Origin: Takakia lepidozioides
Taxonomy: Eukaryota > Plantae > Bryophyta
DNA length: 64,000 bases
Assembly (NCBI GenBank): GCA_030704615.1
Contig: CM060734.1
Coordinates: 63,488,001-63,552,000, forward strand
Direction of reading: 5' to 3'
Part shown: piece after piece, positions 13,226 to 63,936 of the stretch
How positions within the stretch are numbered: position 1 is the first letter of the stretch
Layout: each line of letters begins with the position of its first letter
Notes under the pieces: generated by a model
What the model was told of the DNA's origin: nothing
Databases searched by the model: none
What the model saw: the letters and a program-made list of their open reading frames with translations, nothing else
Position numbers and translations under genes: made by a program

Positions 13226-13506
13226 CTGGACCCACAGTCTATCCCTGCTCCTTCAGCTATCCCTGCCTTTGCACAAACCATGTATAGATCCTTGCTTTGC
13301 TGCTAGCAGCTGACAGTGACAGTTCTAGCAAACACCCCAACCTAACACATCGTAGCAAGAACCTATCACACTAGTTCCTATGCTGAATTGCTCCCAAAAC
13401 CCTAAACTAAAGAAGTTGCACTGGGGAGAGAGAGGATGACAATTTCCAACAAAGCTTTTGATTGATCTTGTTGTCTGCTTCTCTATATAATCTAACAGGC
13501 ATTCAC

Positions 13507-15021
13507 CTTTTTGCCTTGATTGCCCCACCATTGACTGGGGTCTGAAAAATATTCCTTCCAAAGCTTCTCTTCTGTTTTGGATACTTCCTGTTGCCACATC
13601 GGCAGTAACATGTCAAAATCACTCCAAACCACCATAGATCCACCCAACTAGGTCACTTGCAGAATTCAACAAGAAAAACTAGGGACGACTCTGATAAGAG
13701 AGCAAAATAGGTCGAAATGTGTTGTAGAAGGTGCCCTCACCACATTGTCCTTGACCATGTGTCATGTAAGCAGCTAGCTTTTCTTTCACCCACGGACGAT
13801 TCAACCAACCATCAACCCAAACGGACCTCTTGTCTGTGCTGCCTGTCTATAGTTGGGTGATCTCGGATTGGTCTGTGAGAACCACCACCATGCAGCTGAG
13901 CAGCCATGGATTTAAACGCGGTCTCCTAAGACCAAGCTGACCCTCCCAAGTACCTTGTAAACACCAAGGAAAAATACCAAATCATGATACCACAGAGCCC
14001 ACACTTTAAGGATAGACAGACGTCTTCACATCGTACATTAAGAAAGCCACACCTTGCAATTGCGGTTGTCCCCTTGTGAAGGGTCTTTAAAGAACTCATG
14101 CGAGGGCTGCTCCATGCTCGAAAATAGACCTTCGTGGCCGAAACTCCAACAACATCAACATTTTGACAAGGTCCTTTAAGGCAACAGTCATGCAAGTCAC
14201 TTTGGACTCCATTGGACTCTACAAAATGAAGTATAAATGAACAAGCGTAGTCTGCAGTCTGGAGATTTTGGAGAGGTCTGAGAAGACGACAAGGGAGCAG
14301 CTTAGCAGCCACAGTCTCAACATCCCAAGTACCTTGCAAACTCAGGGAAAAGACCTTTGCGCATTTCATGCCCTGCTCGGGAAGAACAACCTCTGCTACG
14401 GACAGTAAAAGCAGCCTTTACAGAGGAAAGCGAGATTCCGACCTCACTCAACAACTAGGTCATCCACACAGTAGGATGATGCCAGAGCTCAGTTAAACTC
14501 CCTCAGACTCCTTCACGGCCTATATGAAGAAAACTTACCTTGTCAACGCTACTGTCCCACCATTGTGACGGGTCTTTAAGGAAATCTTGCCAGCGCTGTT
14601 CCATGCTCCAGCGTTGAACTGCACGCCAATCATCAGTCTTGCCTATCGATCCGTGCGCTTTCTTGGTTCTTTGCTCAGAGTACATTCGTTTCTCCTGAAT
14701 TGCGCAAAACACAATTCCGAGCCTGGATCCGATGGCGCAGACATACAACACACCGACCCCAGAAAAGGAAACCGCGAAGTGTTTCGTGATATCGCCTAAC
14801 TTGAATGGCATCCCTGAAGGCGCCATGGCCACCATTGCCAAAAGGGAAGCGGCTTTCAGCTCCCCAGCCCACCCCTTCAATCCGCTGCATGATGCGAGGC
14901 CTCTCGCATGACCGAAGCGAGACGATAGGGCCTTGAGTGTGGAGAGGGCATGTGCGTGCAGGAGACGCGGAAGACGGTGAGTGAGGAAGCTGCAGAAAGG
15001 TATGGTATGGTATGCAAGCAA
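13507..15021 (-). pseudogene. Upstream exons of the PPR locus encoding three OSB-type PDF-like motifs and a transit-peptide-like N-terminus, partly decayed
   Basis: Motifs: WQDFLKDPSQWWDSSVDK|TSPKSPD (donor 14538, acceptor 14277); HEFFKDPSQ-DNRNCK|TNPRSPNY..TDKRSVWVDGWLNRPWV (donor 14052, acceptor 13872, frameshift); LWKEYFSDPSQWWGNQGKK|IHPRGLDFKHH (exon 13587-13507 joined in frame to 13225). Confidence 0.7.
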
Positions 15022-31074: not shown

Positions 31075-31623
31075 TGTCAAGGACGAGAACATGATTGAAC
31101 ACAAACAAGATATCAGACTAGAGGTACAAGACTAGACAAGAAGTCAAGGTCGGCGTGGCCGAATGCATAATGGATAAACATGAATCAAGATTATCTTTAT
31201 AACAATGGACAAGAACTGGAACTCGACTCGAATACTGGAATGCTGGAAACTGGACTGGGGTACCCGATATTGGAAACTGGACTAGAGTACTGGAAGCTGG
31301 ACTGGAGTATTGGTTGGGAACAAGAGTAGCTTGAACTTGTGTTGGCGAGACTGAAGAGTATCCAGTCTCGCCTCCTATATATACTGACTACTAGGAAATT
31401 TCCTAAGAAGTTTTCCCAATGGAGGTTTCTTGAAGGAGAAGTTTCCTCCAAATGAAGCTTCCTGAGCAGTTTCCCAAGTTACTCTCGGTAATTTGATAAC
31501 TTATGGTAACTAATGGTAAATTATGATAGATCATGGTAAATCACGGTAACTTTCGTTAACATGGTAACTTGATAACTTCTGGTATTTACTCCTGGTAAGT
31601 TTCTCTGGGCTATGTCCATGACA
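31075..31623 (-). mobile_element. 5' LTR (~549 bp) of the chromovirus
   Basis: Termini TGTCAAGGAC...GTCCATGACA (inverted, TG..CA), lying ~40 bp upstream of the gag ATG on the minus strand. No partner LTR is visible. Confidence 0.75.
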
Positions 31624-34600: not shown

Positions 34601-37126
34601 TCATATGTATGCTAGTGCGTCTCCTAAGTGAGGCCCAAGTGCGATCTCTAGAGTAGCTTGTGTCGTTGGCACAAGTGTCCACTGTCATCTAAGTCATCTA
34701 AGTCTAATGATTTAGCCATATCTAATCATTTTTTTTTCCCACATAGCCTATGACCAGATTTGAACCGGAGACCTCTCCCTTGTTGTCTCTTCCGCGATGG
34801 CCAACCATCCGTTGAGCCATTGAATGAATTTTGATTGATCTGATATTAGTCCGTGACCTGTGCGAGGGTGTCTCAAACGTACTGGCAAAGTTTGGAAGCA
34901 AACAAAAATGATTTGGATGGGCAACCATCCGCTCACCCGTTGAATGTATTCCGCTGGATCTGCTATTGCTTTGGGACCTGTTGGACTGTGTTTCGCGTGC
35001 TCACGATTTTTTTTTTTCATTCGGTTTTTTAATGGGGCGTGTAATGTAGCCATATGCAACGTGCGTGCCAAATTTGGGAGCAAACATAATTCATTTGGAC
35101 CCAAAACCACAATTTCTTCCCTGTTTTGCACTCCAAACTTGATTTGTGTTCAACTTCATGCACTCTTCATAGAGAGTTCTGCAATAGTGAGCGAAGAGAA
35201 CACTTTTTTTTTGGGGCATTTTTTATTGGTCCAAATTTTGGTGGGGGAGTAGTGGTGGGATGCTGGAAGCCGCAGAACAAAATTGAGCCAAAAACAAAAT
35301 CGATACGTGCCAGAAACCCCCGATGAAAGGCAGTGCAAACCTTGGACCTGCGGTGTGGGAGATGTGGAATTTCAACTTTGGGTCGCTGGAAATTCCCGAA
35401 AAATAGCAAAGTGGGAATTCCTTGGACAATGGTTGGAGCCTTGAGAGGAGAGATATCAAGGGAAAGGTCACCGGTTCAAATCTGGTCGTAGGCTCTATGG
35501 AAAAAAAATGCATTTGGACTTAGATGACATTGGACCTTTGGGCCAACGGCAGAGGCTACCCTAGAGGTAGCACTTGGGCCTGGACATAGGAGACACACTT
35601 GCACACATAGGAGATTGCACTTGGGCTTAGATGACACTTGACACTTGGGCCAACGGCACAGGCTACCCTAGTCAATATATGAAGCGAGATTTTTGTTTTG
35701 TTTTGTTTTGTAGCGTCGTTGAGATCTCCTAACCCGCGGGGCCTAGCTCCGGTGCTTGGTGCCGTTGGAAAGCCCTCGACGAGGAGGGGTACACCGGCTT
35801 GGTCTCATGATTTTTGGACACCCGGTGTGGGAGATGTGGAATTTCAAGTACTTTGGGTAGCTGGAAATTCACGAAAAATAACAAAAATAGCAAAGTGGGT
35901 ATTCCTGGGATAATGCTGACAGGAGACATATCAAGGGTTCAAATCTGGTCGTAGGCTCTGTGGAAAATTGATTAAATATGGCTTGCTTCATATATTGATG
36001 CACTTGGACTTAGATGATATTGGACACTTCCTAGATATGGGAGACGTACTTAGATACTTAGGAGATTGCACTTGCGTTAAGATTATCCACTAGACACTTG
36101 GGCCTCTACATGGGAGATGCACTTGGATACATGAATAGAAGATTGCACTTGGGCTTAGATGAGCCTCGACATAGGAGACGCACTTGGATACATAGGAAAT
36201 TGCACTTGGTCTTAGATTTCAATTCGTCACACATGGGCCGACGGTATAGGCTACACTAGAGGTCGCACTTGGGCCTCGACATAGGAGAGGCAATGGCATA
36301 CATAGAAGATCTTACACTTGGGCTAAGAGGACACTTGACACTTGGGCCAATGGCACATGCTACCCTAGAGGTTGTATTTAGGCCTCGACATAGGAGACGC
36401 ACTTGGATACATAGGGGATTGCATTTGGACTTAGATGATGACACTAGACATTTGGGCCAACGGCACAAGCTACCCAAGAGGTCGCATTTGGGCCTCGACA
36501 TAGGAGACGCACTTGGATACATAGGGGATTGCACTTGGACTTAGATGATGACACTGGAGACTTGGGCCAACGTCACAGGCTACCCTAGTCAATATATGAA
36601 GCAAGATGTTTGTTTTGTTTTGTTTTGTTTTGTAGCGTCGTTAAGATCTCCCAAACCGCGGGCCCCAACCCCGGTGCTTGGTGCCGTTGGAAAGCCCTCG
36701 ATGAGGAGGGGTGCACGGGCTTGGTCTCATGATTTTTGGACAAGCGGTGAGGGAGATGTGGAATTCCAAGTACTTTTGGTCGTTGGAAATTCACAAAAAA
36801 TAGCAAAAATGGCAAAGTGGGCATTCCTGGGACAATGGTTGGAGCCTCGAGGGGAGAGATATCAAGGGAAAAGTCTCCGGTTCAAATCTGGCTGTAGGCT
36901 CTATGGAAAAAAACTTACTTTGATGCCATTGGGCTGTTGGAAATTCAGGAAAAATAGCAAAGTGGGCATTCCTGGGAGAATGGTTGGACTCATGAGACCA
37001 AGCCCGTGCACCCCTTCTCGTTTAGGGTTTTCCAACAGTACCAAGCACCAAGGTTGGGGCCTCGCGGTTGGGGACATCTCAAATCTACAAAACAAAATAA
37101 AACAAACGTCTCGATTCATATATTGA
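31624..37126. repeat. Complex inverted (foldback) repeat array: forward arm ~31624-34790, unique spacer ~34790-35337, reverse arm ~35338-36985, short forward unit to 37126
   Basis: ~480-bp units with (CAAAA)n tracts, nested ~20-bp CCAAGTG submotifs and a 315-bp higher-order duplication (33221 vs 33536). The right arm is the reverse complement of the left-arm units. Confidence 0.9.
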
Positions 37127-43254: not shown

Positions 43255-44410
43255 ATGACAGGATCTGGCGGCACGAACACGGCATGTGCCGCCTGCAAGT
43301 ATCAGCGACGCAAGTGCTCAGCCGATTGTCCATTGTCGCCCTACTTTCCTCCCGATCAACCCAAACGTTTTCAGAATGTGCACAAGCTGTTCGGTGTGAG
43401 CAACATCCTGCGCATTCTGAAACATGTTGATCCCAGTAAACGCGAAGATACCGTGAAGTCTATCGCTTACGAAGCTGATACTCGGGAGAAAGACCCAGTT
43501 CATGGCTGCCTGGGCGTAATCACATTGCTACAAAACCAAGTAGCCAAACTGAGGGAGGAGCTTGATATCGCACGTGAGCAGCTGTTTATGCTGGAGCAGC
43601 AACATAACTTCAGTCAGCAGCTGCAACATGCAGCTGCCTCGTTAGCAGCCGCCACAGGTGTGGTGCATGCTGGCTCTGCTCATGGCGGGGTTCTCATGCA
43701 GCAAATGCAACAGTATGGTGGCCTAGGTGGAAGCGCGCTTTCCAATTCGAACTTTGATGATCAGTATTTAAGGCATGTCGATAGCTTCGATCAGCCTAAA
43801 CAAGCAGATTCAACATCATATGATATGGCCAGGTGAGAAATCGCTCTCTTCCTCTCACATAGTACAGCACATAATACAGATGTGGAACACAGGAGCCTGA
43901 TAGACTGAATTCTCCTCCAGGAAGTGTCGAACAGCTAAATCATGTGCAAGTGAAACTTGCTATCATGGAGCTTTCTCATATATAGAACGTCTGGACAGAA
44001 GTCTCGGACGAGTCGTATACGTAAATGTCTACGAATGGGTTTGTTGTTCAAAAGCAGATATCTAAAATTCCAAGTGGGAGCCTCGAAGCAGGTACGTTGG
44101 AGGAGAACCGTCTGGACTGGCAGGGCAGGTGAAAGTGGAGCAGGCAGAGCAACTACGAAGAGCAGTGATACAGTTCGGAGCGGACTCTGCATTTGTCGAC
44201 AGTACAACGAGCCATCACCAAATCCAACGTGAAGCCATGGAGCAAGAGCATGTCATGGCCATGCGCAGACCAGGGAACAACCTGCTCAACCTTACCGTGG
44301 CATCAGATAGTGACTTAAGGAGAGCCAGCATCTTAAGTGGCCAACCTATACAAGACGGTCATGAGTTAAGGAGAGCAGGGGTTTACCTTACCTTGACGAA
44401 CCAGCATTGA
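43255..44410 (+). CDS. LOB-domain (LBD/AS2) transcription factor, class I, LBD22/27-like (~298 aa); exons 43255-43832 and 44092-44410
   Basis: CAACKYQRRKC..C zinc motif, FQNVHKLFGVSN, DPVHGC and a leucine zipper. AG|GTGAG donor and GAAGCAG| acceptor restore a frame ending HELRRAGVYLTLTNQH*, which resembles the LBD27-type C-terminal motif. An upstream coding exon cannot be excluded. Confidence 0.9.
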
Positions 44411-46092: not shown

Positions 46093-47082
46093 ATGGCCAC
46101 GGCCAAGAGGAAGAAGGCGGCACAAGATGCGCGAGTGGGGGTACCTCCCAAACGGGCAGTTTCTTCTTCCACCATACAAGCACCGCTTGAGCTTACAGAT
46201 ACCCTCAACACAGAGGCAAACAGTGAATCCACCTCATGCCTTCACGAGGTCTCGTATCCGGAGGGCTACCAGATTCCTGAGAGGTCAAGTCCCCTTACTT
46301 CCTCGAAGCCCGCTAAGGAGTATCCCTTCATCCTTGATCCTTTTCAGCGCGAGGCGATTCTGTGCTTGGAGGCAGGCGAGTCTGTTCTGGTAAGTTGCTG
46401 CTAGAAATGTCTTTATTTGGAATGCTACAAATGCCGGTGGTATGGGGCGGTGCATCTGCTCAACAATGCACCTGTTCCGTGGAAATAGCTTGCTTATTCG
46501 TAAGGAACCCTAAACTTCTCCTCTCTCAAAACACTGGGAGTTGTAACTCGACCTTTTTGTGGCTGACAGCAGAGAAACTTGAGTTCATACTTCTAGCGAG
46601 TCTATGAGATTTCTCTATTTTCTGCGCACGGATTTCACTGTTTTCTATCACACAGTAAACCCTAGAATCTGACCTTCTGATTTTAATATGCATAGGTCGT
46701 TTACAAGGAGTAAGTCTGCTGAAAGCTACTATCTCCAGGATACGATTTCTACTCGAGGACTTCTAACTCCTTGCTGCAACATTTAGTTTATGGAAGGCAA
46801 AGGGTCGGAATCGGTACAGGGGTGGATGATTTTGACTGGTGGGTGCAGGTGTCAGCTCATACCTCAGCAGGGAAAACAGTGGTGGCCGAGTATGCAATTG
46901 CCATGTCCCTTCGTGACAAACAGCGGGTGGTGTATACATCCCCCATCAAAGCTCTCAGTAACCAAAAGTTCCGTGAAATGTCTGAGGAGTTCTCTGATGT
47001 GGGCCTTATGACAGGGGATGTTACCATTTCACCAAATGCGTCCTGTCTGGTATGTTTAGCATCATTGAGTAAGAATGCATCT

Positions 47083-47116
<34 letters not shown>

Positions 47117-50100
47117 CATGTTCAGATAATGTCATCATGTCCCAATTGGATGGTGTGCCTAGAATGTTTCATATACATGGTGCCAGGAGCGGAAAACGTA
47201 GGAGAAAAGGAGAGCAGCAAAGCAGTTGCAAAAGGCACACACCAGTAGAGAGACTTGCCACAAAATTTGACATAGCATCTAGCCCTCCAACTGTGCTCTA
47301 TAAAGTGCATAACTCTGGCACCATTTATGGGTACTCACCCCAGAACTCATTGGGAGCCAAAGCTATTTGCTTGGTTTCAAATTTTGTTGACTGAGTAATT
47401 TGAGTAGAGTAGCCTTTGTAGATGCTCCAGAAATTGATGTGAGTATTATACCAACCTCCAGACCAAGAAGGCCACAGTTTTTGCATTCTACCTCCAAGCT
47501 CTTTGAACTGAGCAGTTTCAGCAGAGAACACCTAAACTAGCATAAGATTTATTTGGTCTCTGCACACTCATGTCACACATTGGCCATGTGAATTTGTGTT
47601 CTCCAGCAGGATTAACTTATTGTACAGAGCTCGGTCCTTCACTTAAAGCTAGAACCCAATAACAGGTAGGCCCTTTGGATGGTCTTTTCCGTTCCAGTTG
47701 TTCATCGCCCTCTGGTTATTACTAAACTTGGCCTCAATTCCTGCAACTTCTCTAGGATGTCTCACCATAATTGGAAGATGTAGCCTAACCCTCTCCGCCA
47801 GAAGTTGCAGGCTTCTAAGAGAGAGAAAGGGGGTAGGAGAGAGAGGGCGACTCATATGGGGTGGGTTGCAGGTGATGACAACAGAGATATTGCGGAGTAT
47901 GCAGTACAGAGGATCAGAGGTGATGAGGGAGGTGGCATGGATCATATTTGATGAGGTCCACTACATGCGTGACCGAGAACGTGGTGTAGTATGGGAGGAG
48001 AGCATTGTCATGGCTCCCAAGAATGCACGCTTTGTCTTCCTCTCTGCCACCGTCCCCAATGCTAAGGAGTTTGCTGACTGGGTTGCCAAGGTCTGTCTGT
48101 CTGTCTCTGATAATAAACAGCTAAATGCAAAGCTTTGTGTCTCACTCTAGTTTCCCACTGCAGAAGGATTAATAATGAAGTTAAAAGGACCATGCTCTGA
48201 CCGTCATAGGCATATGCATCTGCAATGTGGGAGGGCAACTCCAACCATTCTAAGATTTAAAGTCCATGCAGCTTTCGGTGCTCAAAAAGACTAAGTCAGC
48301 ATGTTCTAGAACAGCTAACATGGCTTTTTGGCGTACCACCCTTGAGCTCTTGACGCGATGCGTTCAAGGCCAGATGGTAAGAGGTCAGTTCAATGGAAGG
48401 CCTAATACCCAAGATGATCGACTCTATTTCTTGAAAGCAAGACCATTCTTGAAAGCAGGTTTAAGTCCTGGCAGAAAAATGTAGAGATTTTCTAGTACTG
48501 CAGGAAGAACTGACCCTGCCAAATCAACTTTCCCTTGAAGGCTGTTGTTGTCTATTATTTGATCTAGTCTGGGACAGATAGATCCTTTCTTGTCAATACA
48601 AGACAAAAACTATTCGTGTGTGTGCATAGAATATATGTGTACACCTTCTACATGATCTGGTCTATTGCTCTCGTGGCTGGTCTACTGTAGCCAATGCCTT
48701 CTATCAGCATTAGGAAACCTGAAAATGAGAGGCTTGAGAATTTTTTTTTTCTCTCTCTCTTGCCATGATCTTTATAGACAGCATTCAAGAATTGCTTGAT
48801 CACGTTATTCTGTTCAGATGGAACAGGAAATTGGATAACGGGATGACTCATTAGGGATCACCCTAGAGGTCTTAACCTAAAGCTGCTGCCCTGTATTGTT
48901 AGTGAGCTTGGCCACCCTTCTCATTTGGAAGAGGAGCAGGCAAGAGCTGAAGCAGCTGACTACACTATGGCTACAAGCAAGGCATCCATTCAGACTCCTT
49001 CAACACCGATGGCTGCTTGATATGGCAACACAAAGAGAGTTGACACTGAGGAACTTACATGGACTTGATTAAGCTCTACTCTGAATCTAGCAACCCTTGT
49101 GCAAAACCTAGTGCTTGTATATGGGTCCTTGCTTGAGTACTTGGTCTTCCTTTTGGAAATAGGTGCTTGTTGTTTACTTACATGGATTTGATTGAGCTCT
49201 ACTCTGATTGTATGAATGCTTTTGCAAACCGAAGACCTCTATGTGTCCCCTTGCTTCAGTATTTGGCTCTAGTGACACCTTCCTTTCGGGAATGGGTGCT
49301 TACTGACATGAGACCACCTCCTCTCCCTATGGAGCATGGGCTGAAATAGGCTACCTATGTTGACTGATGGATTTGATTGAGCTCTACTCTGATTGTATGA
49401 ATGCTTTTGCAAACCGAAGACCTCTATGTGTCCCCTTGCTTCAGTATTTGGCTCTAGTGACACCTTCCTTTCGGGAATGGGTGCTTACTGACATGAGACC
49501 ACCCCCTCTCCCTATGGAGCATGGGCTGAAATAGGCTACCTATGTTGACTGAAATGGCTGAAAGGACCTGCCTTACCTCTCCTCTCTTTGCTAGTATGAC
49601 CTGTTGCAGGGATGACATTGATAACAAATGTGAAGGGGTTTAAGCCTGGGGGTCCACAGGGATCACCAACCTGTTGGTTGGCTGTGATGGATCCAGGTGA
49701 TGCCACTTCACCTTCTTCTGTTGCAGGAAATGCTACTAAGGGCAAGAGACTAAGGGAATGAGGATTTGAGCTCTCTCAAACCTCAAATCTGTTTGTATGT
49801 ATTGATTGTACACATACTACTGCTGTTTTTGCTCTGTTGGATCTATGAGCTTGTACCTACACGGGAAGGAGTTACTGTTAAGGAGACTCTTGTGCTCTTC
49901 CTACTTCTATTGTTGCTTCCTATGATTTGAAAGTGAGGAGGTAGATCTGTTTATGAGGAGGCCCTACCTACTAGTGTGCATATGATTCCCACTTAGTAGA
50001 CCTTAAAACTGGTTTTCCAGCAGGATATGTGAGGAGAGGCAGATCTGGGTAGAGATGGTACCTAAATTAGGCTGTCTGAGGCCATTAAATGAGGCAAACA

Positions 50101-50911
50101 CAGCACAATGTGCTTAGTGTTTCGTTGTCTCACTTTGACATGTAACACACACACTCTCTCTCTGGCAAGCGCAAAGCATTGGGTCTCACTAAATTTTTCC
50201 ACTGCAGAGGGATGAACTCTGAAGTTTGAAAAACCATGCTTTGCCGCATTATTAGGCCTGCCTTGGAGTACGCATCAGGAGTGTGGGTTGATAATTCCAA
50301 CCAGGCTAAGTCTCCAGAATCCATTCAAGTGGGGGAAGCTTGGCATCCCTCCCTTAAGCTCCTGACGAGATGAATTCAAGGTCAGATGGTGGGGTCAGTT
50401 GCAAGGTATGACTAATATCAGATGTCCTAAGTTAATCGAGTCTATATCTTGGAAGCAGGATCGCCCCTCAAACAGGCTAAGTCCTGGCGGAAGAGGGTAG
50501 AAGAGATTGTCAAGGATCTGAACTCTGAAGTCTGCAAGTCTTGACCCTGCTGGATAAATCTTAGGGGCTGTAGTATCCAAGGCCATGTTTGTTGCCAGGA
50601 AGTTGTCTGATGAAAATAAAGTTAGGCAGAAACTTCCTGAACTTGTTTCCAGTCTGCGACATGGGAGAGTTTACCCATTCTCGGCATTAGACTGCAATTT
50701 AAACTAAGGGTGGGAAGCCTAGCAAACAGTTGCAGAGAGGAAAGGGGGATTGCAAATGCCTGTTGGATGGGCAACCTGAAGACAATATTCATTTTCTGAT
50801 TCATTGTCCTGGGTACTCTCACCAGAGAGACGCCCTCTTCAAATCCATCAAGGGAATTGTGCCTGTACAATCGATGGTCACAAGGCTACGGCAAACAACG
50901 TCTTATGAGTA

Positions 50912-50946
<35 letters not shown>

Positions 50947-53900
50947 ACACACACAAATGCACATCCTTCAAGAAGTCAGAGAAGGCATGGAGGCAGAGCT
51001 TAGTAAGTCCACAAAGAAATGCTCTCTAAAGTACATGATCTGAGCCCTGCCTCAAGTCTACTCTGAGATTTTTCAAAGGTTTTTGATGGATCTCCTAAAG
51101 AGCCAGACCCAAGGTTGACGATGACTCGTCTCTTCTCTCTGTACGCGGTTGGGTTGGAGCTCTAGGTGTGGGGCCTGACTGGGAAGTTTTAGAAGCCCTG
51201 TTTCCTCAAGGGGGAGGGCCTCAGCTGTGATGTCTCATATGGGATGCAATGTTGGCCAAGTATCTGAAATATATCGAACTGGCGAAGCAACCTCTCTGAA
51301 AGTGGGCACTGCATACGTTCATGGGGTGTATGCACACAAGGCCATCGGTCAGTTTTAGTTCTTGTGAATAGCTACACAGAGAGAGTCTGAGTTTGTGGTC
51401 CTCAATTAATTACAACAAAGTATGTTGTGCTCCCAGTCAACAAGATAAGGGTGGAGGTTTTGACTCAAGGAGAGGACATGCAGGTGCATCAGCAGCCTTG
51501 CCACATTGTGTACACTGACTTCCGGCCCACACCATTGCAGCACTACATATATCCTGCTGGTGGGGATGGTTTGTACCTGGTTGTTGATGAAAAAGGCATA
51601 TTTCGAGATGATAGCTTTCAAAAGGCTGTAAACGTTCTCTCCTCAAAGGAAGGAGCTGATGCTACCAAGGAGAATGGAAAGCGGCAGAAAGGGATGAAAG
51701 CAAGGGAGCTCAGAGAGCCAAGTGACATCTTCAAGATTGTCAAGATGATTATGTTCCGCCAGTTTGATCCTGTCATCATTTTCAGCTTCAGCAAACGCAA
51801 TTGTGAAGAATGTGCCAATCAGGTACTGCATTTGCCAAAACGTTTTTTTGAAAATCCTGAGCCGGTCATTGCTATGGTACCTGGAGATGGAGGAATATGA
51901 ATTTCAGGTGTTCTTTGTGGTCCACATGCGAGTTGTTCAATCCCATGCCACTGATCGATCAGGAGGTAGTACTTAAGGCCTCTTTTGTCATCTTGATCTT
52001 GTATTTATCACATCACTGGTCTGTTTGCAGATGGCCAAGCTTGATTTGAATAACGAGGATGAGAAAAAATTAGTTGATGGTGTATTTTGGAATGCCATGG
52101 ATTCGCTGTCGGATGATGACAAGAAGCTTCCCCAGGTTCTTTCTTCATTCACCTTTCATTTGTGTTGCTATGAAGTGCTGATTTCGTATCTTGATTATTC
52201 TATTATGGTGATCATACTTAAAGGTGCAGGGAGGGAGGGGCAGGTCTCTCAGCTTTTGCCGTTGCTGAAACGAGGTATTGGCATCCACCATTCTGGCCTT
52301 CTTCCCATTCTGAAGGAAGTCATTGAGATCCTCTTCCAAGAAGGCCTTATCAAGGTGCAAGCATGTCACTGCTCCTCCTTAGCTCCATCTACTCTGTCAC
52401 TTGCTCCGGCTTTTGCTTGTTGTGCTCGGCATAAGGTAGCAGCAATGCAATAGGTTGGTACAAGTCATTGCTATTGAACAATTGGGTGAATTGTCTTGTA
52501 TTCTGTTATTGAACCCAATGTTAAAGTTTGTTCGCTTGTTGTCCTGAGACCTTAGGAACGTTCTGTGCAGATCTCTTCTTTCTTCTTTCTGACATGTTGT
52601 TAGGTGTTGTTACAAACTTGCAAAGTGGTGCTTTCCTGGATGCGGTCTCTTCTACTTGGTTTATTTTTCAGAAGTAAGTTTTGTGCTTACATGCATTAGA
52701 CAAATATATGACAATGCTCTATATTCTAACTAGGGTATGATTGCCCAAAGCTGCCTATGATGACTTTGTAAACTTACCAGAGGAGTGGGTTTTGGGTTGG
52801 TGGGATAAGTGCCTGTTTGCGACAGAGACATTTAGTATAGGGTTGAACATGCCGGCAAAGACTGTGGTGTTCACCAATGTGCGCAAGTTTGATGGTGACA
52901 AGTTCCGGTGGATCACAAGTGGTGAGTACATCCAGATGAGTGGGCGTGCTGGGCGACGCGGGCTTGATGATCGTGGCATTTGCATCCTCATGCTGGATGA
53001 GAAGTTAGAACCCTCCATTGCCAAAGCTATGGTCAAGGGTGCCGCTGACCCTCTTAATAGGTATAAAACTGCTCTCTCTCTGTCTCTCCCTTTGCTGTTT
53101 TTTAGGGTTTCAGTTGTGAGCTCTTCAAATCTTGAAGATGCTCATTTCCTGTTTGTACTTTGATGTGTTGCTATGCAAAGACACTCACAAGGTGTACCCC
53201 TTGTAAGCTGTCCTTGCTTTTCTCCTTTAAGAAAAGGATGATGTACCTGCTTTACCTCTTTGAAAATGACAATTGCAAGTATTTTTGACCACCTGTATAA
53301 AACCCTTCATTCAGGTGAGCAATTATGATCCCCTCCTTGCCCTAACTACCCCATTTAATGTACAATGAGGTATTTCCAAACAGGTGGCTCTCTAATAGTC
53401 AGCCATCAACACCATGAATGGCTCTTTATGGCTTTCAATTGAGTTAGCAGCTCCTCCAGTAGTTGATGCTAATCTCATCATAATTATGCGGTAAAAAAAG
53501 GGGGAAAGCCACTCCTTTCCCTCTATGTATAAGAGTGTGTTCGCTTCAGTCTCGGCCATCTTTCTCTAGTTCCAGAGGTGACCGTGCTACAAGTAAGGAG
53601 CATGGCATCATGGCACACTTCAAGGTCCCCCTCTATCTTCCAGTTCAGTTTGTAGTGAAATGCATTGCCTTAGCAATCTCTTTCATCTTGTCAAGTGGAG
53701 AGCTTGAAGGTTATAACTGTTTGTATGTGTGGAAAGCTTCAATGTTAGCTTGCTTTCTCTCATTGAATGGGTGTCCTACTCTCTTCTAAACCTTTGGATG
53801 AACTGTCTTAAGAGTGGATATCCAATGGCCACAAGGCTACGGCAAACAACGTCTTATGAGTACATTCTCTCTTCCCTCCAAGCCTGGGCCTAGTTATTGG

Positions 53901-56900
53901 GCAAAGCACACACAGCAGATTGATGCTTGTGTAAAGGGATTTCTAGAGGATATCTGGAAACTCGGATCGGTTGTCTGTTCCCAGGTAAGTCATACTACTG
54001 GCGTCAGCCCCTGATAAAGATAGTTTTTGTACCTTTGTCTTCCGCTCAAACAGGGCGTGGGGGCCACGTCAAACAGTGTCATATTAGTACATTCTCATTC
54101 TCTTTGATTGTCCCTTGTAGTTCTACTGTGTCCCAAAAGGCCCTCTGGGTGGCCGTAGAAAACTTCTCTTTTTTGCACTAAGGTTTATGTTATAATCGAT
54201 ATGAGAAAAGGAGTACTCCTCCCCCTCTCTCTCCCTCCCTCTCTTCCCTCTTGTTGCCCTGCATACAACCCAGACTGACGGGCAGATGCCTTCCCCATGC
54301 ATGTCATTTCTATGGTAAAGGCAGGGCTATAAAACTAGAATCAATGTCTCTGCAACCGGGCTGGTGATGGACAAGTGCCTCTGTGAGAGCCTTAATGGCA
54401 GTTGCAGGAAAATAATTTAATACCTTCAGCTGAGTTTCGGGGATAAGCTAATCCCTGGTGGGTGCGAACCCACCAAAGGGTCTGGGATGGTTAGTTTCCC
54501 GCAGGGGGATGGCTATGAGGCCATGGCAAACAATGTCTTATGAGTACATTCTCTTTCGTCTTATTCTAACCAAACTAGGCGCAGGGTCTATAGCTACAAG
54601 GCTATTGAAACCTCTTGTAAGGACAGTCTCTCTCTCTCTGTCTCTCCCCCAAATGAATGTAAGCATAGAGCTTCCCTGAACTTGTTTCGATTCTGTGACA
54701 TGGGCAAGGACCTTAAGGATGATCTGAAGGGCCTACCTACCCTCGGCACTAGACTGAGATTCAAACTCAGGGCGAGGAGCATACCTTTGAAGAATAGACC
54801 AATGCAGAGAGGAAAAGGAGATTGTCATTACCCAATGTGCGGGCAATGTGAAGACTATATTCATTTTCTGATACATTGTCCAGGGTATTCTCACCAGAGT
54901 GTGACAGTCTTCAGGACAATCAAAAGTATTGTCCCATTACCTCTGTTCACCAACTTTCAAAATCTTGAGGCTGAGCCTAAAATCCTGGGCCTGTTGGGGT
55001 GTATCTTTTGGGCTGCTCACACACAGCAGATTGATGCTTGTGCGAAGGGCATCTGGAGGATATCTGGAATGCCCAAACTAATTGTTTATACCAAGATAAG
55101 TCACTACTGGAGTGAACCCCTCATAATGGTAGTTTCTGGTCCCTTTTGTTCTGCATAAACCGGGGTCTATGGCCGCAAGGCTATGGCAAACAACATCTTA
55201 TGAGTACATTCTCTAATACTTTTGAAAGCTGCATATATCTGTTTCTTATGTTTCTCTCCGGAGAAATTTGATAGTTTATTTTGGATAAACCTTTCCTAGG
55301 CTGAGGTGGCTTTGTGCCTTCCACTATCTGCTACTACATACATGGTCTGTGAAGACAGAAGGGAGAATGGACGTCCGTGCAGGTTCCTAATGAACCAAGA
55401 TGACATTTGAGGGCAAACTAATCCTGATATCTTGTGTTAGGCCTTGTAGCAGCAGCATACTGAGTATATTTGTACACCTTCTACATGATCTGGTCAATGT
55501 ACATTGCTCTTTTGGCCGGTCTACTGTAGCCAATGCCCTGTTCAGAATTAGGATACCTGAAAATGAGAGGCTTGAGGGTTGTCTTGACCTGGTCCACAAC
55601 CACCTCCACAAATTTTGGAGTAAAGTTAGTACCAACCACTTTATTCTTGATTGAGTTGAGTCAGTGGCCCTCCTTACTTTCAGCCACTTACCTTAAACTA
55701 AGAGTAGAATCGATGGTAATGTTCTATGAGCTGCACTGTATAAACAAAGGAAGTATGACGCAAACAGTACTTCTGTCACACTCTTCTGACCAAGATGCAT
55801 TTTTGAAAGCCTTGACAAGATGAAACAGACTCTGGCACAGATGGTGCATTGCACCCGAAATTGCCATGGTTCATTATCTAGAATTTCTTCCTGGCTCTAT
55901 CATTTTCTGGTACCAGTGGCCTTGGCTCTAGCTTTGCTGAAGAACTCATACCTGCAAGACAATTCCATATCCAGCTCTGTGATTTCAGACAAAGAACCAA
56001 AAATTCATAGAAGTAGAGAGGCCCACACCTGCACCCGTCGCAGAAAACACCACATAGGATGTGGGTAATTGAGAATGTGCGAGGTTAATGGCAGGCCCTC
56101 GTGTGCTATAGGTTTCCAAACTGAACCAGTATGTATAATATCAGAACGTAAGCCCCACTTGGGTACAACCATGCAAGGGAGTCATAGGCGTAGATCACTT
56201 AGCCGCCACCACCGAAAGCGTTTGTGGAGGAATCTAGTCATCATGAAGGTCTTTAGTGCTTCCCTTCTTCCAAAATACTGAACATACATATTCCCTTTTT
56301 GGTCTTTTCGCTTTACACATTGATTCCATGTGGCTCACTGCCTTCACTCTGCTCGTCATGCATAGCCCATTGCTGTGTATAGAAATCCTTGGCTGCTTAC
56401 TTGCAGTGAGCAACCAATTTGTGCCACTACCTATGAGAGGACTTCAGGAAAGACTAACAGTGGGTTGCCCAAATTATACTATTGAGATTTCTCCAATCCA
56501 CTAAGATAGTGGCATCTAGAAAGTGTGCGATGCCTTTTTCTTTCCCCTATTTTTTGATGAATGAAGTCCCAGTACTGTGCACTTTTGCAATGGAGGCAGT
56601 TCAAGGTTAGTTACTGCTTTGGATTAGGTACAGAATGGGGTGTTTTTGGAATACAAGGGGCTTAATTAATGGTGGATTAGTGAAGCTAACTACACAGCCG
56701 CTTAGTGATTCTCATTTCAAGTTCCTCATTCATTGTTGAAAGTGGAGGCGGGTGTTTTTGGACAATGGCCAGTTAATACAGCAGCCAGGCATGAAGGCAA
56801 TGGTATGCATGGTTCACTTTATATACTGCTACAATGCACACATTTTATCATACTTCAGTTTACGGGAGAATGGGAAATGAGGGGCCGTGGAGTCTTCCAG

Positions 56901-59900
56901 CTGTGTCCACCGGGTCGGCTAGTTTAGGGTTCTGAGATGGCATGTCTGAGGAGTTGTAGGTAACTCAGGGGAGACTTAGGGGTCCTACTTGTACGCATAC
57001 GGTCAGATTTTGCACAGGTCGTCATCTATGCAGGGAAGTTCTGGGTCCCTCCATAGGTAGATGCGCGAGTTCCGCACTGGGAGGCAGGTACTTCTGGGCC
57101 CACACATGGCGCCTGGTTTTGCCAGTTTTTTGGGAAAGGTGTAGGTGCACGCCTTGTGCACTCAGGGCACCTTTAGGTGCGTATCAGGGATGAATATATG
57201 GCATTTCAGGAGGGATCACTGAGCAGAAGTGGGATAATGTGCTATGATTCATATATAATGCATCCTTGATTGGAAAATTTTGTGCTTTGCACAAGTGATT
57301 GTTGCTTCATTTGCTATTCTGCTCATGTAATTTTTGTGACACCCTTTGAGCAGTGCACACTGCTTAAAAGCACACTTCTAGATACCACCACCTTAGGTTA
57401 GTGATATAGTGCATAGTCACTATACATCACTATGAGGTATGTTGTCGTAGCATGAGCTCATTTCCAGAACTTATGTTGTCCAAGCTGTGAGCTGTTTGAT
57501 CAAGTTTTAAACCATGTGTGGTAAGTTTGCAGTGACTTGATAGAGGTGTTGGTTGAAAACAGAGTAAAATACAATGCTGCTTGACATAGCAGGTATTTTC
57601 TTATCTCCTACTCTCCATCACAGAGCAGTATAGCAGTTCATGAAAAACTATGAAGCATTCTGCCTATCTCTGTGGCATATTTAAGATGGGAGGGAAACTC
57701 TTACTTTGATCATATACAATATCACCACCACCCACCCTGATCACCTCTATGGATATGGAGTCAATGCTGAGTCTGGAGCAAGAGGAAATGTGACAGAGCC
57801 TTCTTTGAAGTTGTCTATAAATTGGTCCAGTTTGGAATAGACAAAACCTTTGTTGTCAAGGCAAGACAAGCCCTCTCTCTCTCTCTCTCTCTCTCAAAGG
57901 AAAGAAGCAAACATGGTGAGTGCGAACCCCACAAAAGGCTCCGGGAGGGTTAGTTTCCCATGGGGTTGATGGCTGTAGGGCTATGGAAGACCAAGGTTCG
58001 CAGGGAACAGCATGAGTACATTCTGTTTCAGAGGAAAGAGGCAAGACCTCAGATCACACTTTTGAACCCTCGAGTAGCACCTTGCAAAGTTGAGATATGC
58101 CAGTGAGTTCAAGCCACCAAGGGCGGATAAAGCACAGAATCCTTGTGCAATGTTTGGTATTTGGTTGTTTCATTCTGTGGTTTTACAGTGTTGTTATGTC
58201 CGTTGTAGGAACAATTGTTTTGTTCCTATGCAGGATGTAATACTTTTTTTTCTGTAAGCCAAGTCGGAGGAGGAAATTGATTCCGAAGTTAGCACTGCCA
58301 TATGCTTAAATGTATGAGCTGCATCTTGGCGCAAGTCTTTGCTGACCCTCCTTTCATCATCAGGACTAGGTGGCTCCCCACATTTCTGCAAGCTAGTTCA
58401 GCTGGGAAGAGTAAACGGTTAGGGTGAGGTTACTATGTCAAGGGTTGCCTAGTAGGCACCAAGAGTCCTAATGTGGTGAGTATACATATCCGCACCCTCC
58501 CTCCCTCTCTCTCTGTCTCTCCCTTGTTTTGTCCACTTGCTCCAAGACCTTCAGTCTCGCTCTGGCAATGCAAGAACTGAAGTCCAAAGAGCAGTGGATT
58601 CTAGGGAGAGTTTTGTCTGTGGCTGACAAGATCATTGGGAGGAAACTAATTGTCTGCGGTAGAGCTGTTAATTGGTGGACCAATGAGATTAAACTCAAGA
58701 TAGCTGAGAGATGAGTCCTCTATAAAGACTGCTGAAATGTGAATACCAAAAAAGAATTGTGGGCTAGGTACTACCAGATCCACAAAGATATCAATCAGAT
58801 TGGTGTCAGAAGAAATTATACTGGGAGAAGCTACACAGTGAAATAAACCATGGTGGTAATATAAGAGATTCTGGTTGGCCCTTCAAAGTGTGTACAAGCC
58901 GAAAAACTGTCAGCAAGTGCAAGCACTGAGGACTACTAAAGGTGCGGTGGTGACTTCAACGGTTGACATTGTCAAACCTTTGAAACGGGGTCCTGTGAAG
59001 AATAGAAGGACACAGTTTGACAAACTGTTCCTATGATTCAAGACAGCCCTGATGAATTAAAGTATATTTCAAAGGCTTACAATGCTCCCATTACTTCTTC
59101 TGAGATTGTGGAAGCAATTGAGCATCGTTGCAAGAGCCAAGATATCCGTTGCTGAGAGTAGTTACTAGTTTGCTACCTGCTCGCCTCCCGCGCCCTCCGC
59201 CGGGACGGTGGGGCAGGGGGCGAGCCTGGCTCAAAGGATATAAAGCTGGTGGACCTGATGGCATATTCAACGAGCTTATCTACACGGTGGCGATCCCATG
59301 ATAGAGGCCCTTGTACTTCTCTTTTACCTTATCTGGAGGACTGAAATATTCCCCTTTCGCTTGCGACAGGGGGTCATTGTCAGTCTATACAAGAAGGGTG
59401 ACAGAGAAGAACCGGGGAACTACCGAGGCATCACGCTCCTCAATGCAGTTGGCAAGACATTCTGCAGAGTTATAAGTACTCATCTCAAGGTTGATCTGGA
59501 TTCTAGAGGTTGTTTCCATGAAGGCCAAGCTGGCTTTCGGCGAAACAGGGGCTGTGTGGACCATATCTTCAATCTAAGCCAGATTATCCAGGGAAGAAAG
59601 AAAGAAGGGAAACCCAATTTTGTATTTTTCTTGGATGTCAAAAAGGCTCATGACACAGTGTGGAGAGATGGTCTATGGCTCCGACTCTGGTCATGTGGGA
59701 TCAAGGGAAATATGTGGAGAGTGGTCCGTAATTGTATGCTCACACCAATAGTTGTGTCACTGTTTATGGACAGAAGTCTAACTTCTTTGACATACACCAA
59801 GGTGTAGCTCAAGGATGTACCCTCTCCCCTCTGCTCTTCAATGCTTTCATCAATCAACTCCTTGAGGATGGGGAAAGTGAGGGATTTGGGTTAAGGGTGG

Positions 59901-62900
59901 GTGATGCAACCATACTAGCCTTTATGTTTGCGGATGACTTCACAGGCATAGGGGAGACTGCTTCCAATCTCCATTCATTGATGGTGAGGATAGCTCAGCT
60001 TATTTGATGCAAGACAAGTTTTGTTCTCTGAGAAGAGGCGATGTGTGAAATAAACATGGGCTCCTCCATATGTTGTTGCACATGCCATATTCGCCACGAC
60101 ACTAAGTATTGATGGTGTGGGGGTCCAGTGCATTTCACCTGGGCTACAACATGCTGTTAAATCAGATGCGGTGTGAAGAAAGCAATCCCGAAGAGCTATT
60201 GCGGCAGTCATTCCACCAGTTCCAGTCTGACCATGCTTTGCCACAGCTCCAGGTGAGTTCTCTCCTCTACCTTCTTGATTGTGACACATGCTCTATGGCT
60301 TATGGGTGGGCTGTGTATGCTGCACATGAATTATGAGTGCTTTCCCATGTGATCACCAATACCCTTTGGCTTTTAAGCTATCTCGATGCTGAAGGTGGAA
60401 ATGAACGATTTTGGCTCTGTTTCACCAAAAAGCAGTACGACCCGCTCTTGATCACTCCACAACAAGCTCGATGATGTTCTGTAGTGGGTGACTGGTTGCT
60501 GACTAGGCTGTTGCAGTATGCTACCCCATTAACTGTCTGTGTTTTCTGTAGAGCAGAAACGGGTGAAGGAACTGGAAGAGGAGCGGGAGGGCATAAGTAT
60601 CGAGGGTGAGGACCAAGTCCAAGACTACTACATGCTACTCCATCAGCTGTACAGCTTGAGGTCTGACATCCGCAGCATTGCTTTTTCTCCTCGCTACTGC
60701 CTGCCCTTTCTTCAGCCTGGTCGGTTAGTACGACTTGTACCCTGCACCAAGGAAGGTGAGGATGCAGTGCTGGCTATGAATGGTGCACCAATTTGGGGGG
60801 TCGTTGTCAACTTTGATAAGGCACCTGGTGCTGCTAAGGAATTGATCGATGGTATGGTTTCCCTTAACCTTGGTTGCCTGCCTGTCTTGTTTTTGTTTGT
60901 TCAGGGTTTAAGGTTGTGTGTTAAAGCAACCAGGGAGTTGAAAAGCTTATGTTTCTCATGGGGAGTGGTGAACTGTGCTACCAGATATATTTGTGGAATG
61001 GGAGGAGACTGCAGTTTTCGCTGGCAATATAATGTTTCCAAATCCCATAAACAAGAAATATGCCATAGGGTAGTGATCAGTATCTCCGTAGGCAGGCATG
61101 GTATTACAACTTACTGTGCAATGATTCATAGGCAGGAAGATTGCCTGTTTTTGCACAGTGGAAGACAAGCAACGTGAAGAACATCGGATAAGGCATGTCA
61201 GAATCATACAGAGGGGGTTGTGCATGTTGGCTTGCGTACAGAGGATGGTGGAAGCCCCCAGGCAGATGAAGCTAAATACAGGATAGATGTGCTTGCCAAT
61301 TGTTTAACGTGTGACGTGGGAGGGCATCACAAACTGGTGCAGCCTGTGTCCCTGGATGAGACAGGGGAGCCGGCAGTAGCAGCTATCTCCCTTTTGCAGG
61401 CCTGTGTTCATTGTCCTATTTCCACTCTGTTTCTAGGTGCTTCCTCATGTTAGTCTTGCATTATCTTCTAGTCTACATTTTAGACGGTAAGCAATCGTCT
61501 GTTCCACTTTGTATAACTCTTCCTGAACAGTATTTGTGATGATAAGCTTTCCGTTTTTCCATGCCAGAATGTAGTATTGTGGGCTTGTTGGCCTCATCAA
61601 GTTGAATGGGATTGGACTGAGATGGACAGGTTGAGAGCTTGAGTGCGATACGCATCTACATTCCTAAGGACCTGCGACCTATTGAAGCACGTGAACGGTG
61701 CCTGAAAACAGTTATGGAGGTGCTGCGCCGCTTCCCTGAAGGCCCTCAACAGCTTGACCCGGAGGACGATATGCAGGTGAGATAATCACACCTTACATGA
61801 GAGGATGGAGGGGTTTTCAGAAGAAACAGGTGGAGACACAGATGGTTGGAAAGGACAGTGGACAGTCCAGATGGATTTGGAGATTGATGCAGACAGAGAT
61901 AGAATTGAAGAATCAAATGGGTACATCAGAGAGACAAACAGTCACATGAAAGTGACACTGATTGGATAGAAAGGGATGGCCAGGGATGGCCAGTAGTCAG
62001 GATCTGATTAGAGGGGGAGTATTAGCTGGAGCCTTGTAGCCATAGACTCCAGAGGCTGTTGAGACACAGCAGAAATAGCAGGGGGCTTAAATATGGGTAA
62101 TACCATTGCCAGAGTTTCCTGAATATTAAAGTTGATTCTCGCCTTAGAGAGTCTTTTCAGGATTCTGACACAAGGAGCAGCTTTCTATCCAAGCTGTTTG
62201 AAAGAGGTGTAGCGAGTTTTATTCTTGGAGCCAGTTGTCTGAAGGATGTTCATTGCATTAGATTAAGGATCCTCTGGTATCCTCAACTGACGGCCCCTTA
62301 ATTCTTACTAGTCTCAAACGCTTGCAATGGTAGAGCATATGGAGTTTCCAAAGAGGCAGTGCTCTTCATCCTGATTGGTATGGTCCAGTGCCCATGTCAT
62401 CTACGTAGACCATGAGATATCATGAGGCTGTAGAAATGTGATTGGGACTCAGCATGTAGATCTCACCCAGGCTACGCCTAGGTATGGTGAGACCCATAGA
62501 TCTAGGGAGATGTGATAGTGGCAGCAGCTGACAGGCCAGTCTATGACATGGGTGGAGTGGACAGGTGGAGAGTGGGGCATATAAGAAGGCCATCCGGAGA
62601 GTTGAGGCAGTAGAGGTTCTTCTTGCAGGGCATGCCCTGGCCCAGTCGCCTACACTAGGTCCACGCCTGCGCACTTTTTGCCACAAGGAGGATCTGACTG
62701 CATGCATACGCTTGGCACGTAAGGAAGTGCGTGCTGCTTCTACATTGGTATTTAAGGATGAACTAAAGGGGCGACGGCGCGTTCTGCGACGCCTGGGGTA
62801 AGTTATTCTGAGATTCTGCACTGTTTTTTCATTGCATTCTTTCCTTTCTAGTGTCATCCATGTGTCGGCAACTTGTATGTGGCCTTCTCTGTATAGAACT

Positions 62901-63936
62901 GAGGCTATTCCGATGTTTTCTTTTGTCCGTTCGTTGTTCAACAATCGTAACAAGGGAGAGGTTCGCAATAAAGTCTTGACCACTCTCAGATTGCTGTTGT
63001 GCTATGTCATAAGAGTTTGACATGAGAGCTAATTTGCCCGTCTTCCTATTTGCAGGGGTAGATTATGAAAAGGGAGGGATACATTGTTTAAAAGTGGGCA
63101 TATTGTGGATGCGCGCAGTTATTCAACAGCAGACGATGTGGTGGAGCTTAAGGGACGGGTTGCATGTGAGATCAGCAGCGCTGATGAGCTTATACTGACT
63201 GAGCTCATGTTTGGAGGCACACTAAAGGATGCCACTGTGGAGCAGGTTGTGGCGCTGCTGTCCTGCTTTGTGTGGCAGGAAAAGACAAAGAATTTCACCA
63301 AGTTGCGAGAGGACCTTTCTGGCCCCTTCTCTCAATTAAGGGATGTGGCTCGCCAAGTTGGTAAAGTCCAGGTTGAGTGTAAGGTATTTACAACCATCCT
63401 CCCTGTTCTGAGAATCCATTCCTACTTCCCAACATCGTCCATATGGGATGCATAATTGATACTGGTTACATGGCTAGTAATCTTCCTTTCCTCTCAAGTT
63501 TTTTCCTGTTGTAGACAGCTGACTTTGACTGAGTTTGGGTGAATGAGGTGGCAAGTGGGTTGTCTTCAACAGGAGATTTGGGTGTGCACTTGTGTAAGCC
63601 GGAACTAAGGACTTATGATCTAGTTTTAATATGGCTTGAGTGGTGTGGACACAGCAGATGCCCCTCGATGTGGAGGATTATGTGGCCTCATTCCGGCCTG
63701 ATATAATGGAGGTAGTTTATACTTGGTGTAAAGGTGCCAAATTTTTGGAGGTAATGAGAACCACACAAGTGTTTGAGGGTAGCCTTATCCGAGCTCTTAA
63801 GCGTTTAGAGGAGGTGTTGCAGCAGCTGGTGGTGGCATCACGGGCAATTGGTGAGACTGACCTAGAATTAAAGTTTGAGGACGGAATAGTTAAGATCAAA
63901 AGAGATATTGTATTTGCAGCTTCATTGTATTTATAA
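46093..63936 (+). CDS. MTR4: Ski2-like DExH-box RNA helicase MTR4 (nuclear exosome cofactor), 14 exons, ~1007 aa: 46093-46389, 46849-47049, 47872-48090, 51484-51822, 52031-52135, 52244-52354, 52810-53060, 60129-60252, 60557-60851, 61242-61399, 61630-61776, 62565-62797, 63119-63383, 63658-63936
   Basis: Motifs [29 protein letters not shown] and [10 protein letters not shown], the arch region, and C-terminal [12 protein letters not shown]. Exon lengths sum to 3024 nt in frame. FSIGLN and the arch region look closer to MTR4 than to HEN2, but a tree is needed. Confidence 0.92.
47084..47115. repeat. (GT)16 microsatellite in MTR4 intron 2
   Basis: Direct reading of the sequence. Confidence 0.95.
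49182..49552. repeat. Near-perfect 185-bp tandem duplication in MTR4 intron 3
   Basis: 49182-49366 vs 49367-49551 differ at about one position. An older partial copy lies at ~49058. Confidence 0.95.
50150..50943 (+). mobile_element. 3' portion of an RTE/RTEX-like LINE with CCHC finger and (CT)n tail
   Basis: [13 protein letters not shown]; RLQFKLR; [21 protein letters not shown]; tail GGCTACGGCAAACAACGTCTTATGAGTACATT(CT)n. Confidence 0.75.
53820..55215 (+). mobile_element. Stack of 5'-truncated copies and tails of the same LINE plus a SINE-like partner
   Basis: Tail motif at ~53825, ~54065, ~54510 and ~55170. ORF 54682-55158 reads [24 protein letters not shown]. Confidence 0.75.
55387..55830 (-). 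mobile_element. L1-type LINE zf-RVT remnant (second copy at ~48620-48800)
   Basis: LWRWLW...[12 protein letters not shown]...CRRC. The DNA is similar to 48640-48740. Confidence 0.55.
58560..60007 (+). mobile_element. RTE/RTEX-like LINE reverse transcriptase fragment ending ~130 bp before MTR4 exon 8
   Basis: [56 protein letters not shown] and FADD, with frameshifts. Confidence 0.9.
59165..59232 (-). mobile_element. Probable Helitron 3' terminus inserted in the LINE
   Basis: Minus strand: GC-rich hairpin GCTCGCC...GGCGAGC, a 10-nt spacer, then CTAG followed by T. Confidence 0.5.

Follow-up and report, generated by a model that had tools for sequence, protein, structure and literature searches.

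We analyzed a 64,000-nucleotide (nt) stretch of the genome of the moss Takakia lepidozioides (GenBank assembly GCA_030704615.1, contig CM060734.1, positions 63,488,001 to 63,552,000; here called the window, with positions counted from its first letter) and found that the introns of its MTR4 gene carry a compositional polarity centered on the splice sites. Sequence after the donors is C/U-rich, sequence before the acceptors is G-rich and lacks a pyrimidine tract, and the bias continues into the synonymous sites of the adjoining exons. Specific pairing between the two ends of the same intron is confined to a scattered minority of cases. Tentatively, and with the scales close to level, we read the polarity as a degenerate composition code centered on the splice sites and read by proteins, together with a relaxed reliance on the pyrimidine tract. 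The main sample for all results below is this one gene.

MTR4, which encodes a Ski2-like exosome helicase, lies at 46093..63936 on the forward strand and consists of 14 coding exons and 13 introns. Removal of the introns yields a single open frame of 1007 codons, and Pfam matches to the DEAD, MTR4 stalk, beta-barrel, and DSHCT domains were obtained exon by exon. In a quick maximum-likelihood tree, the protein falls within the mosses (support 100) and diverges first among them, Sphagnum and the remaining mosses together forming its sister group (support 88). Database searches returned no close relative of the Takakia genome, the best match to the last exon being 76%. For introns 1 to 6, support comes from the reading frame and from introns at identical positions in the orthologues of Sphagnum, Physcomitrium, Marchantia, and Calypogeia. 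Two public runs, each from a different study and presumed to be RNA, gave contigs that cover the exons and skip introns 8 to 13 exactly, and a loose contig end links exon 8 to exon 7 (at 60129) and thereby gives the intron 7 junction. Seven MTR4 junctions are thus confirmed, and the initial annotation of the window, made from the sequence alone, is borne out by RNA-like contigs for introns 7 to 13, G-rich acceptors included, and by frame and orthology for introns 1 to 6. The same contigs rule out pyrimidine-rich alternative acceptors for introns 7 to 13; the G-rich acceptors are those used in the main contigs, assemblies of a kind that drops rare forms. All 13 introns are of the U2 type by their GT-AG or GC-AG ends, with removal from mRNA confirmed for introns 7 to 13. 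They are ordinary U2-type spliceosomal introns and do not belong to the structured class known from teleosts.

All nine acceptor motifs and all six pairing segments quoted in the initial annotation were found where it had placed them, and its description of the base composition of the intron ends held. In the 20 nt before the final trinucleotide, the G fraction of the 13 introns is 0.42, against 0.235 in random intron windows (P = 1e-4), and pyrimidines make up 0.68 of positions +7 to +26, against 0.52 in random windows (P = 2e-4). By the published definitions of REPA acceptors (at least five purines in positions -10 to -3) and REPAG acceptors (additionally GGG in positions -15 to -3), 9 of the 13 acceptors are purine-rich and 5 are purine-rich with GGG, compared with 3 and 1 of 97 orthologous introns in seed plants. 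A pyrimidine tract (at least 10 pyrimidines in positions -17 to -4) was found at none of the 13 acceptors versus 49 of the 97 in seed plants. No strong tract lies upstream of the G-rich stretch either, the best 12-mer in the last 75 nt of the G-rich introns holding 7 to 9 pyrimidines, and a loose branch-like motif stands at the usual distance in 6 of the 13 introns. The words enriched at 3' ends are TGG, GGG, and TGGG and those at 5' ends TTT, TCT, and CCTT, with TGGG/TTGG versus TTTT/CCTT as the top 4-mers. The skew decays within about 20 nt of the donor and 50 to 65 nt of the acceptor, and introns of 3 to 7 kb carry it too. On the intron side, the 3' ends are T-rich and A-poor like the 5' ends, so that the two are not Watson-Crick mirror images of each other, which fits signals in the sense-strand RNA.

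The initial annotation had missed that this polarity extends into the exons and into other mosses. Across internal exons 2 to 13 (46849..63383, forward strand), synonymous sites favor purines for ~48 nt from the exon start and pyrimidines for the final ~70 nt. Among four-fold degenerate sites, purines account for a fraction of 0.68 within 36 nt of the exon start, 0.43 in mid-exon, and 0.20 within 36 nt of the exon end (odds ratio 8.4). The bias is absent from the same codons in intronless homologues (0.46 versus 0.44 purine), and the four-fold sites and intronless homologues together rule out an amino acid artifact as its source. Acceptor surroundings are therefore purine-rich, and donor surroundings pyrimidine-rich, on both sides of the junction.

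We then compared orthologous MTR4 introns taken from named genomes and metagenome contigs. GC skew at the 5' and 3' intron ends is -0.40 and +0.62 in Takakia, -0.50 and +0.52 in Sphagnum jensenii, with three further Sphagnum species alike, -0.17 and +0.45 in moss L001, which branches between Sphagnum and the Physcomitrium-Ceratodon group, and -0.27 and +0.18 in Physcomitrium. It is about zero at the MTR4 intron ends of Marchantia, Calypogeia, and seed plants. Four-fold purine fractions at exon starts and ends are 0.71 and 0.26 in Sphagnum, 0.71 and 0.34 in L001, 0.58 and 0.41 in Physcomitrium, 0.49 and 0.32 in seed plants, and about 0.50 and 0.48 in liverworts. The lineages are partly dependent samples, as four-fold identity with Sphagnum is 0.46 (chance 0.25). 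Between moss lineages, some orthologous introns have kept similar ends (a few pairwise P values of 0.001 to 0.006, uncorrected), a point in favor of the code proposed above. In the supplement to PMC6339879, Physcomitrella has the highest share of REPAG acceptors among the listed land plants considered here (3.07%, versus 1.02% in Arabidopsis); the main text of that paper does not mention mosses. The distribution seen in MTR4 agrees with this genome-wide table. Judged from one gene, the polarity appears to have been present in the ancestor of mosses and to have weakened in the crown group.

The individual introns, all on the forward strand, follow the pattern to different degrees. Introns 1 (46390..46848, GT-AG) and 2 (47050..47871) have G-rich acceptors with GGG, intron 3 (48091..51483) has a GA-rich acceptor and a short GTCT repeat after its donor, and intron 4 (51823..52030) has the least G-rich acceptor, which is U-rich. 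Intron 5 (52136..52243) is 108 nt long and is predicted to form an end-closing hairpin with arms at about 52136-52174 and 52202-52242, and the G-rich acceptor of intron 6 (52355..52809), which ends in AAG, is G-rich also in Sphagnum and L001. The non-consensus donors of these two introns, GTTCTTT (52136-52142) and GTGCA (52355-52359), are common to Takakia, Sphagnum, and L001. Among the RNA-confirmed introns, the 7068-nt intron 7 (53061..60128) has a CT-rich stretch after the donor and a G-rich acceptor, and intron 8 (60253..60556) has a CT-rich stretch after the donor and a U-rich acceptor with tandem AGs. Intron 9 (60852..61241) is C/U-rich at its 5' end and G/U-rich at its 3' end, intron 11 (61777..62564) has a G-rich acceptor and a donor that no pyrimidine tract follows, and intron 12 (62798..63118) combines a U-rich 5' part with a G-rich acceptor. 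Intron 13 (63384..63657) is C-rich at its 5' end and has a G-rich NAGNAG acceptor of which the distal AG is used. For intron 10, the acceptor given initially (61629) stands and the intron itself is corrected to a GC-AG intron at 61400..61629, with 230 nt skipped in the contigs (4-nt slide) and a G/A-rich acceptor. Its donor, CAG/GCCTGT, is far from consensus, which is unusual because GC donors elsewhere normally match U1 well; the Sphagnum orthologue has GTCTGG.

A few further observations concern the same introns. Unspliced contigs at lower depth cover 60967-61245 (intron 9, both runs) and 63391-63600 (intron 13, one run) and may reflect slow splicing, retention, or DNA. Run X2 differs by C-to-G at 60748 and 61019, probably through strain variation. 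An intron inside exon 9 (60557-60851) is absent in Takakia and Sphagnum and present in Physcomitrium, L001, and L002; intron 9 is absent in Physcomitrium and L002, and L001 has both. This pattern is a possible intron gain/loss marker for moss phylogeny.

The complementary composition of the two ends had led the initial annotation to propose that many introns are defined by end-to-end RNA pairing. Intron ends do pair better than random interior windows (-13.7 versus -9.9 kcal/mol at 30 nt) because of their composition. When ends were swapped among introns, however, native duplexes showed no excess over swapped ones (P = 0.28, 0.25, 0.51, and 0.47 at 20, 30, 40, and 50 nt), and windows spanning the splice sites gave the same result. 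This test has power, since a private 7-base-pair (bp) stem implanted in every intron was detected in 6 of 6 trials (P ≤ 0.02), and a 10-bp stem in half of the introns at P ≤ 0.035. The longest perfect Watson-Crick run is 5.0 nt in native and 5.35 nt in swapped pairs, 13% of which contain a run of at least 7 nt, and the complementary 7-mers quoted initially are at chance level. The end pairings described for introns 10, 12, 13, and the predicted intron of a nearby LBD gene fared likewise (P = 0.07 to 0.71), the intron 12 helix being present in neither the best nor the centroid fold. Whole-intron stability relative to shuffles ranged from z = +1.2 to -1.4 in five introns, with only intron 5 reaching -2.9.

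Nor do the two ends vary together. Richness in C at the 5' end and in G at the 3' end are uncorrelated within introns (rho = -0.015; n = 40, three mosses) and across exons (0.07). No compensatory changes were seen in the intron ends of four Sphagnum species, which are close (about 6 to 7% variable columns); farther mosses were not alignable. Two related ideas were rejected as well: pairing of an acceptor with the next donor, bracketing the exon, showed no excess (P = 0.82), and splice sites are not kept unfolded, as donor and acceptor windows are not less folded than random ones. With native pairs equal to swapped pairs, although implanted 7-bp stems were detected, and with stems that are not conserved between orthologues, the proposal that most introns are defined by their own end-to-end stem, bypassing U2AF, is largely refuted for MTR4, and we consider it very improbable.

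A small number of cases do speak for that proposal. The pairing described for intron 5 was upheld (shuffle P = 0.003 to 0.008), and the intron is predicted to fold into a 108-nt hairpin paired from +1 to within 2 nt of its end, with significance that is borderline after correction for 13 introns. The stem is absent from the Sphagnum orthologue. In S. jensenii, the two ends of MTR4 intron 10 (L008:14854-15138) are predicted to close in a long stem (P = 0.0007; -31.5 kcal/mol) that contains a 14-bp inner helix and is weaker in S. magellanicum, without compensation. These two stems beat all 44 foreign partners at 45 nt. By these folding predictions, a real closing stem occurs in about 1 of 13 introns per lineage, i.e., in a scattered minority and not as the rule. 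Separately, introns 2, 5, and 10 of S. troendelagicum (L014) show five G-to-C changes at their 3' ends with unchanged partners.

A looser form of pairing would be beyond the reach of the swap test, which compares partners only: any C/U-rich donor region may pair through G-C and G-U pairs with any G-rich acceptor and, given cotranscriptional proximity, shorten the intron and aid the matching of its splice sites, as the interchangeable AC/GT repeats of fish do. The advantage of ends over interior windows given above is what this predicts, and in whole-intron ensembles of Takakia there are 3.9 end-to-end pairs in native and 4.4 in swapped introns against 0.6 in shuffles (Sphagnum: 3.6, 3.3, and 0.8). 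For the 45 introns of three mosses pooled, native ends pair slightly better than swapped ones (P = 0.025 to 0.058), but this excess is gone once the best intron of each lineage is removed. In ensembles that include exon flanks, less than one pair forms between the initial and the final 40 nt in seven of nine short introns of the window, and whole-intron stability exceeds that of shuffles in intron 5 alone. Complementary ends also do not co-occur within introns, the key signature in fish (PMC4691745). Furthermore, both the U1 site and the branch-to-AG region fall within the predicted stems, which would thus need unwinding; yeast zipper stems leave these regions free (PMC12350175). On balance, we regard generic pairing as improbable.

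The main rival is a DNA-level, strand-symmetric bias of mutation or repair at exon edges, e.g., uneven repair of G-to-T damage at chromatin boundaries, that the spliceosome does not read and that is visible because a missing pyrimidine tract is tolerated at moss acceptors. The synonymous sites of exons come close to mirror symmetry, with A/G-rich starts and T/C-rich ends, the introns flanking an exon on either side nearly mirror each other in GC skew, and seed plants also show an exon gradient, though a weaker one (odds ratio 2.0). The lack of extra conservation at G and C positions among Sphagnum species, detailed below, is likewise expected from it. On the intron side, however, A and T are not mirrored, and the effect is tied sharply to the splice sites, fading with distance and staying within ~50 to 70 nt of each junction whatever the exon length. 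To our knowledge, a strand-symmetric mutational mechanism at exon edges has not been established in plants. We consider this explanation possible, if on the unlikely side.

Because the marks are tied to splice sites, degenerate, not coevolving, and, in introns, not mirror-like, we return to the composition code introduced at the outset and read them as two separate single-stranded marks. Around the acceptor, intron sequence is G/U-rich (TGG, GGG) and exon sequence A/G-rich; around the donor, both are C/U-rich. Each mark fades within about 20 to 70 nt, and the two would be bound separately by proteins. At the donor, a pyrimidine binder (TIA-1/UBP1/RBP45-like, or the U2AF large subunit bound 5') may help U1 at weak sites. 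At the acceptor, binders of G runs and purines (hnRNP F/H-like and SR proteins), together with AG recognition by the small U2AF subunit, could replace the pyrimidine tract. Selection would act on overall composition and not on single bases. A minority of introns, intron 5 among them, might acquire a real closing stem by drift or retain one, given how readily C/U-rich ends pair with G-rich ones. The second option of the initial annotation, a G-rich-binding factor or altered acceptor recognition, comes close to this reading.

Several points weigh against such a code. The binding proteins proposed above are candidates. Across four Sphagnum species, 3' G positions vary like interior positions (11/112 versus 68/622), as do 5' C positions (10/103 versus 53/553), so that purifying selection per base is not visible. 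The exon bias is close to a strand mirror image, as a DNA-level process also predicts, and the sample is mostly one gene, the sites in the window's other two genes being too few for confirmation of the exon effect. In mammals, moreover, G-tracts next to the AG repress the site and do not promote it (PMC6339879).

A broader claim, that early-branching mosses possess a rewired genome-wide splice-site code, seems to us possible but doubtful. In it, G/purine-rich sequence flanking the AG on either side would specify acceptors and be read by a factor other than the canonical U-tract-binding U2AF large subunit, or by such a subunit with altered specificity; pyrimidine-rich sequence flanking the GT on either side would specify donors; and the code would be strong enough to influence synonymous codon choice. 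A search of the open literature, with subscription papers including the Takakia genome paper outside its scope, returned no description of this polarity in mosses or other bryophytes. It has long been asked how plants recognize 3' splice sites that have no strict pyrimidine tract, and a housekeeping gene in which G-rich acceptors are the majority, with a graded series from Takakia through Sphagnum and Physcomitrium to liverworts and seed plants, offers a natural comparison for this question, Physcomitrium being a transformable host for minigenes. The extension into synonymous sites is relevant to moss gene prediction and to analyses of codon usage and synonymous divergence (dS). If the bias is mutational, it would point to an unrecognized strand-symmetric process at exon edges.

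Elsewhere in the window, five predicted introns of two other genes show the polarity more weakly (3' G = 0.31; P = 0.01). The nearby LBD gene, whose nearest named relatives are mosses over almost its full length, has a matched LOB domain and an intron predicted from the open frame at 43833..44091 (forward strand), with a CT-rich 5' end, a purine-rich acceptor, and no specific pairing of its ends. An OCRE-domain (ZOP1-like) gene on the same strand, recognized by its open frame and OCRE domain, has four predicted introns (2733-4114, 4316-7739, 7945-8274, and 8371-8676) with the same, weaker polarity. A PLS-type PPR gene at 10586-15021 on the reverse strand is preceded by short exons with OSB-type PDF motifs, with decayed PDF copies between; candidate junctions lie near 14538, 13588, 13507, and 13226, and the acceptor at the last of these is G-rich. 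Intron 7 of MTR4 contains an RVT_1 fragment of a LINE-like element (59298-59807), and intron 3 a recent 185-bp tandem duplication (49182-49552; 99% alike). A 30-nt motif ending in a CT run recurs on the forward strand in introns 3 and 7 (50890-50919, 53841-53870, 54525-54554, and 55185-55214) and probably represents a retroelement's 3' tail. At 31500-37100 lies an array of related repeats, dispersed and in both orientations, that are probably nested arms of nonautonomous transposons.

Among known systems, short introns of fungi and Drosophila have a pyrimidine tract between donor and branch point, and angiosperm introns contain position-tolerant U-rich elements. MTR4 resembles them in having pyrimidines on the 5' side and no tract before the AG; the fungal and Drosophila introns differ in being short and lacking a G-rich acceptor, whereas moss introns of 3 to 7 kb show the pattern. 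Yeast zipper stems shorten the distance from donor to branch point and occur in scattered, nonorthologous introns, like the stems of Takakia intron 5 and Sphagnum intron 10. They start at least 10 nt from the donor and end at least 20 nt before the branch point (PMC12350175), thus sparing the donor and lying upstream of the branch point, whereas the predicted moss stems reach both splice sites. Human introns whose pyrimidine tract is weak make use of intronic enhancers, C-rich and G-rich ones, in a manner like that proposed here (Murray et al. 2008, PMC2481429). These lie upstream of the weak tract and are interchangeable, whereas in MTR4 C/U-rich and G-rich sequences are sorted to opposite ends and reach into exons.

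The teleost (AC)m-(GT)n introns, structured so as to bypass U2AF2 (Lin et al. 2016, PMC4691745), are alike in that MTR4 introns lack a usable pyrimidine tract, have a G/U-rich 3' end, and show complementary end composition. No terminal AC/GT repeat pairs were found in the MTR4 introns examined, and simple repeats, within-intron co-occurrence of complementary ends (the signature in zebrafish), and, except in intron 5, excess stability over shuffles are missing. The closest match in sequence is to REPA/REPAG acceptors, in which G-tracts separate the 3' AG from the pyrimidine tract (Nguyen and Xie 2019, PMC6339879) and whose purine definition fits 9 of the 13 MTR4 acceptors, 5 of them with GGG. 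REPAG sites, however, are a small minority, are linked to alternative exons, are described as repressive, and have an upstream pyrimidine tract (PMC6339879). The G-rich acceptors of MTR4, in contrast, make up most of the acceptors of a housekeeping gene, serve its main transcript without a strong upstream tract, and are accompanied by bias on the donor and exon sides. Their likeness to REPAG acceptors is one of sequence and does not extend to frequency or context.

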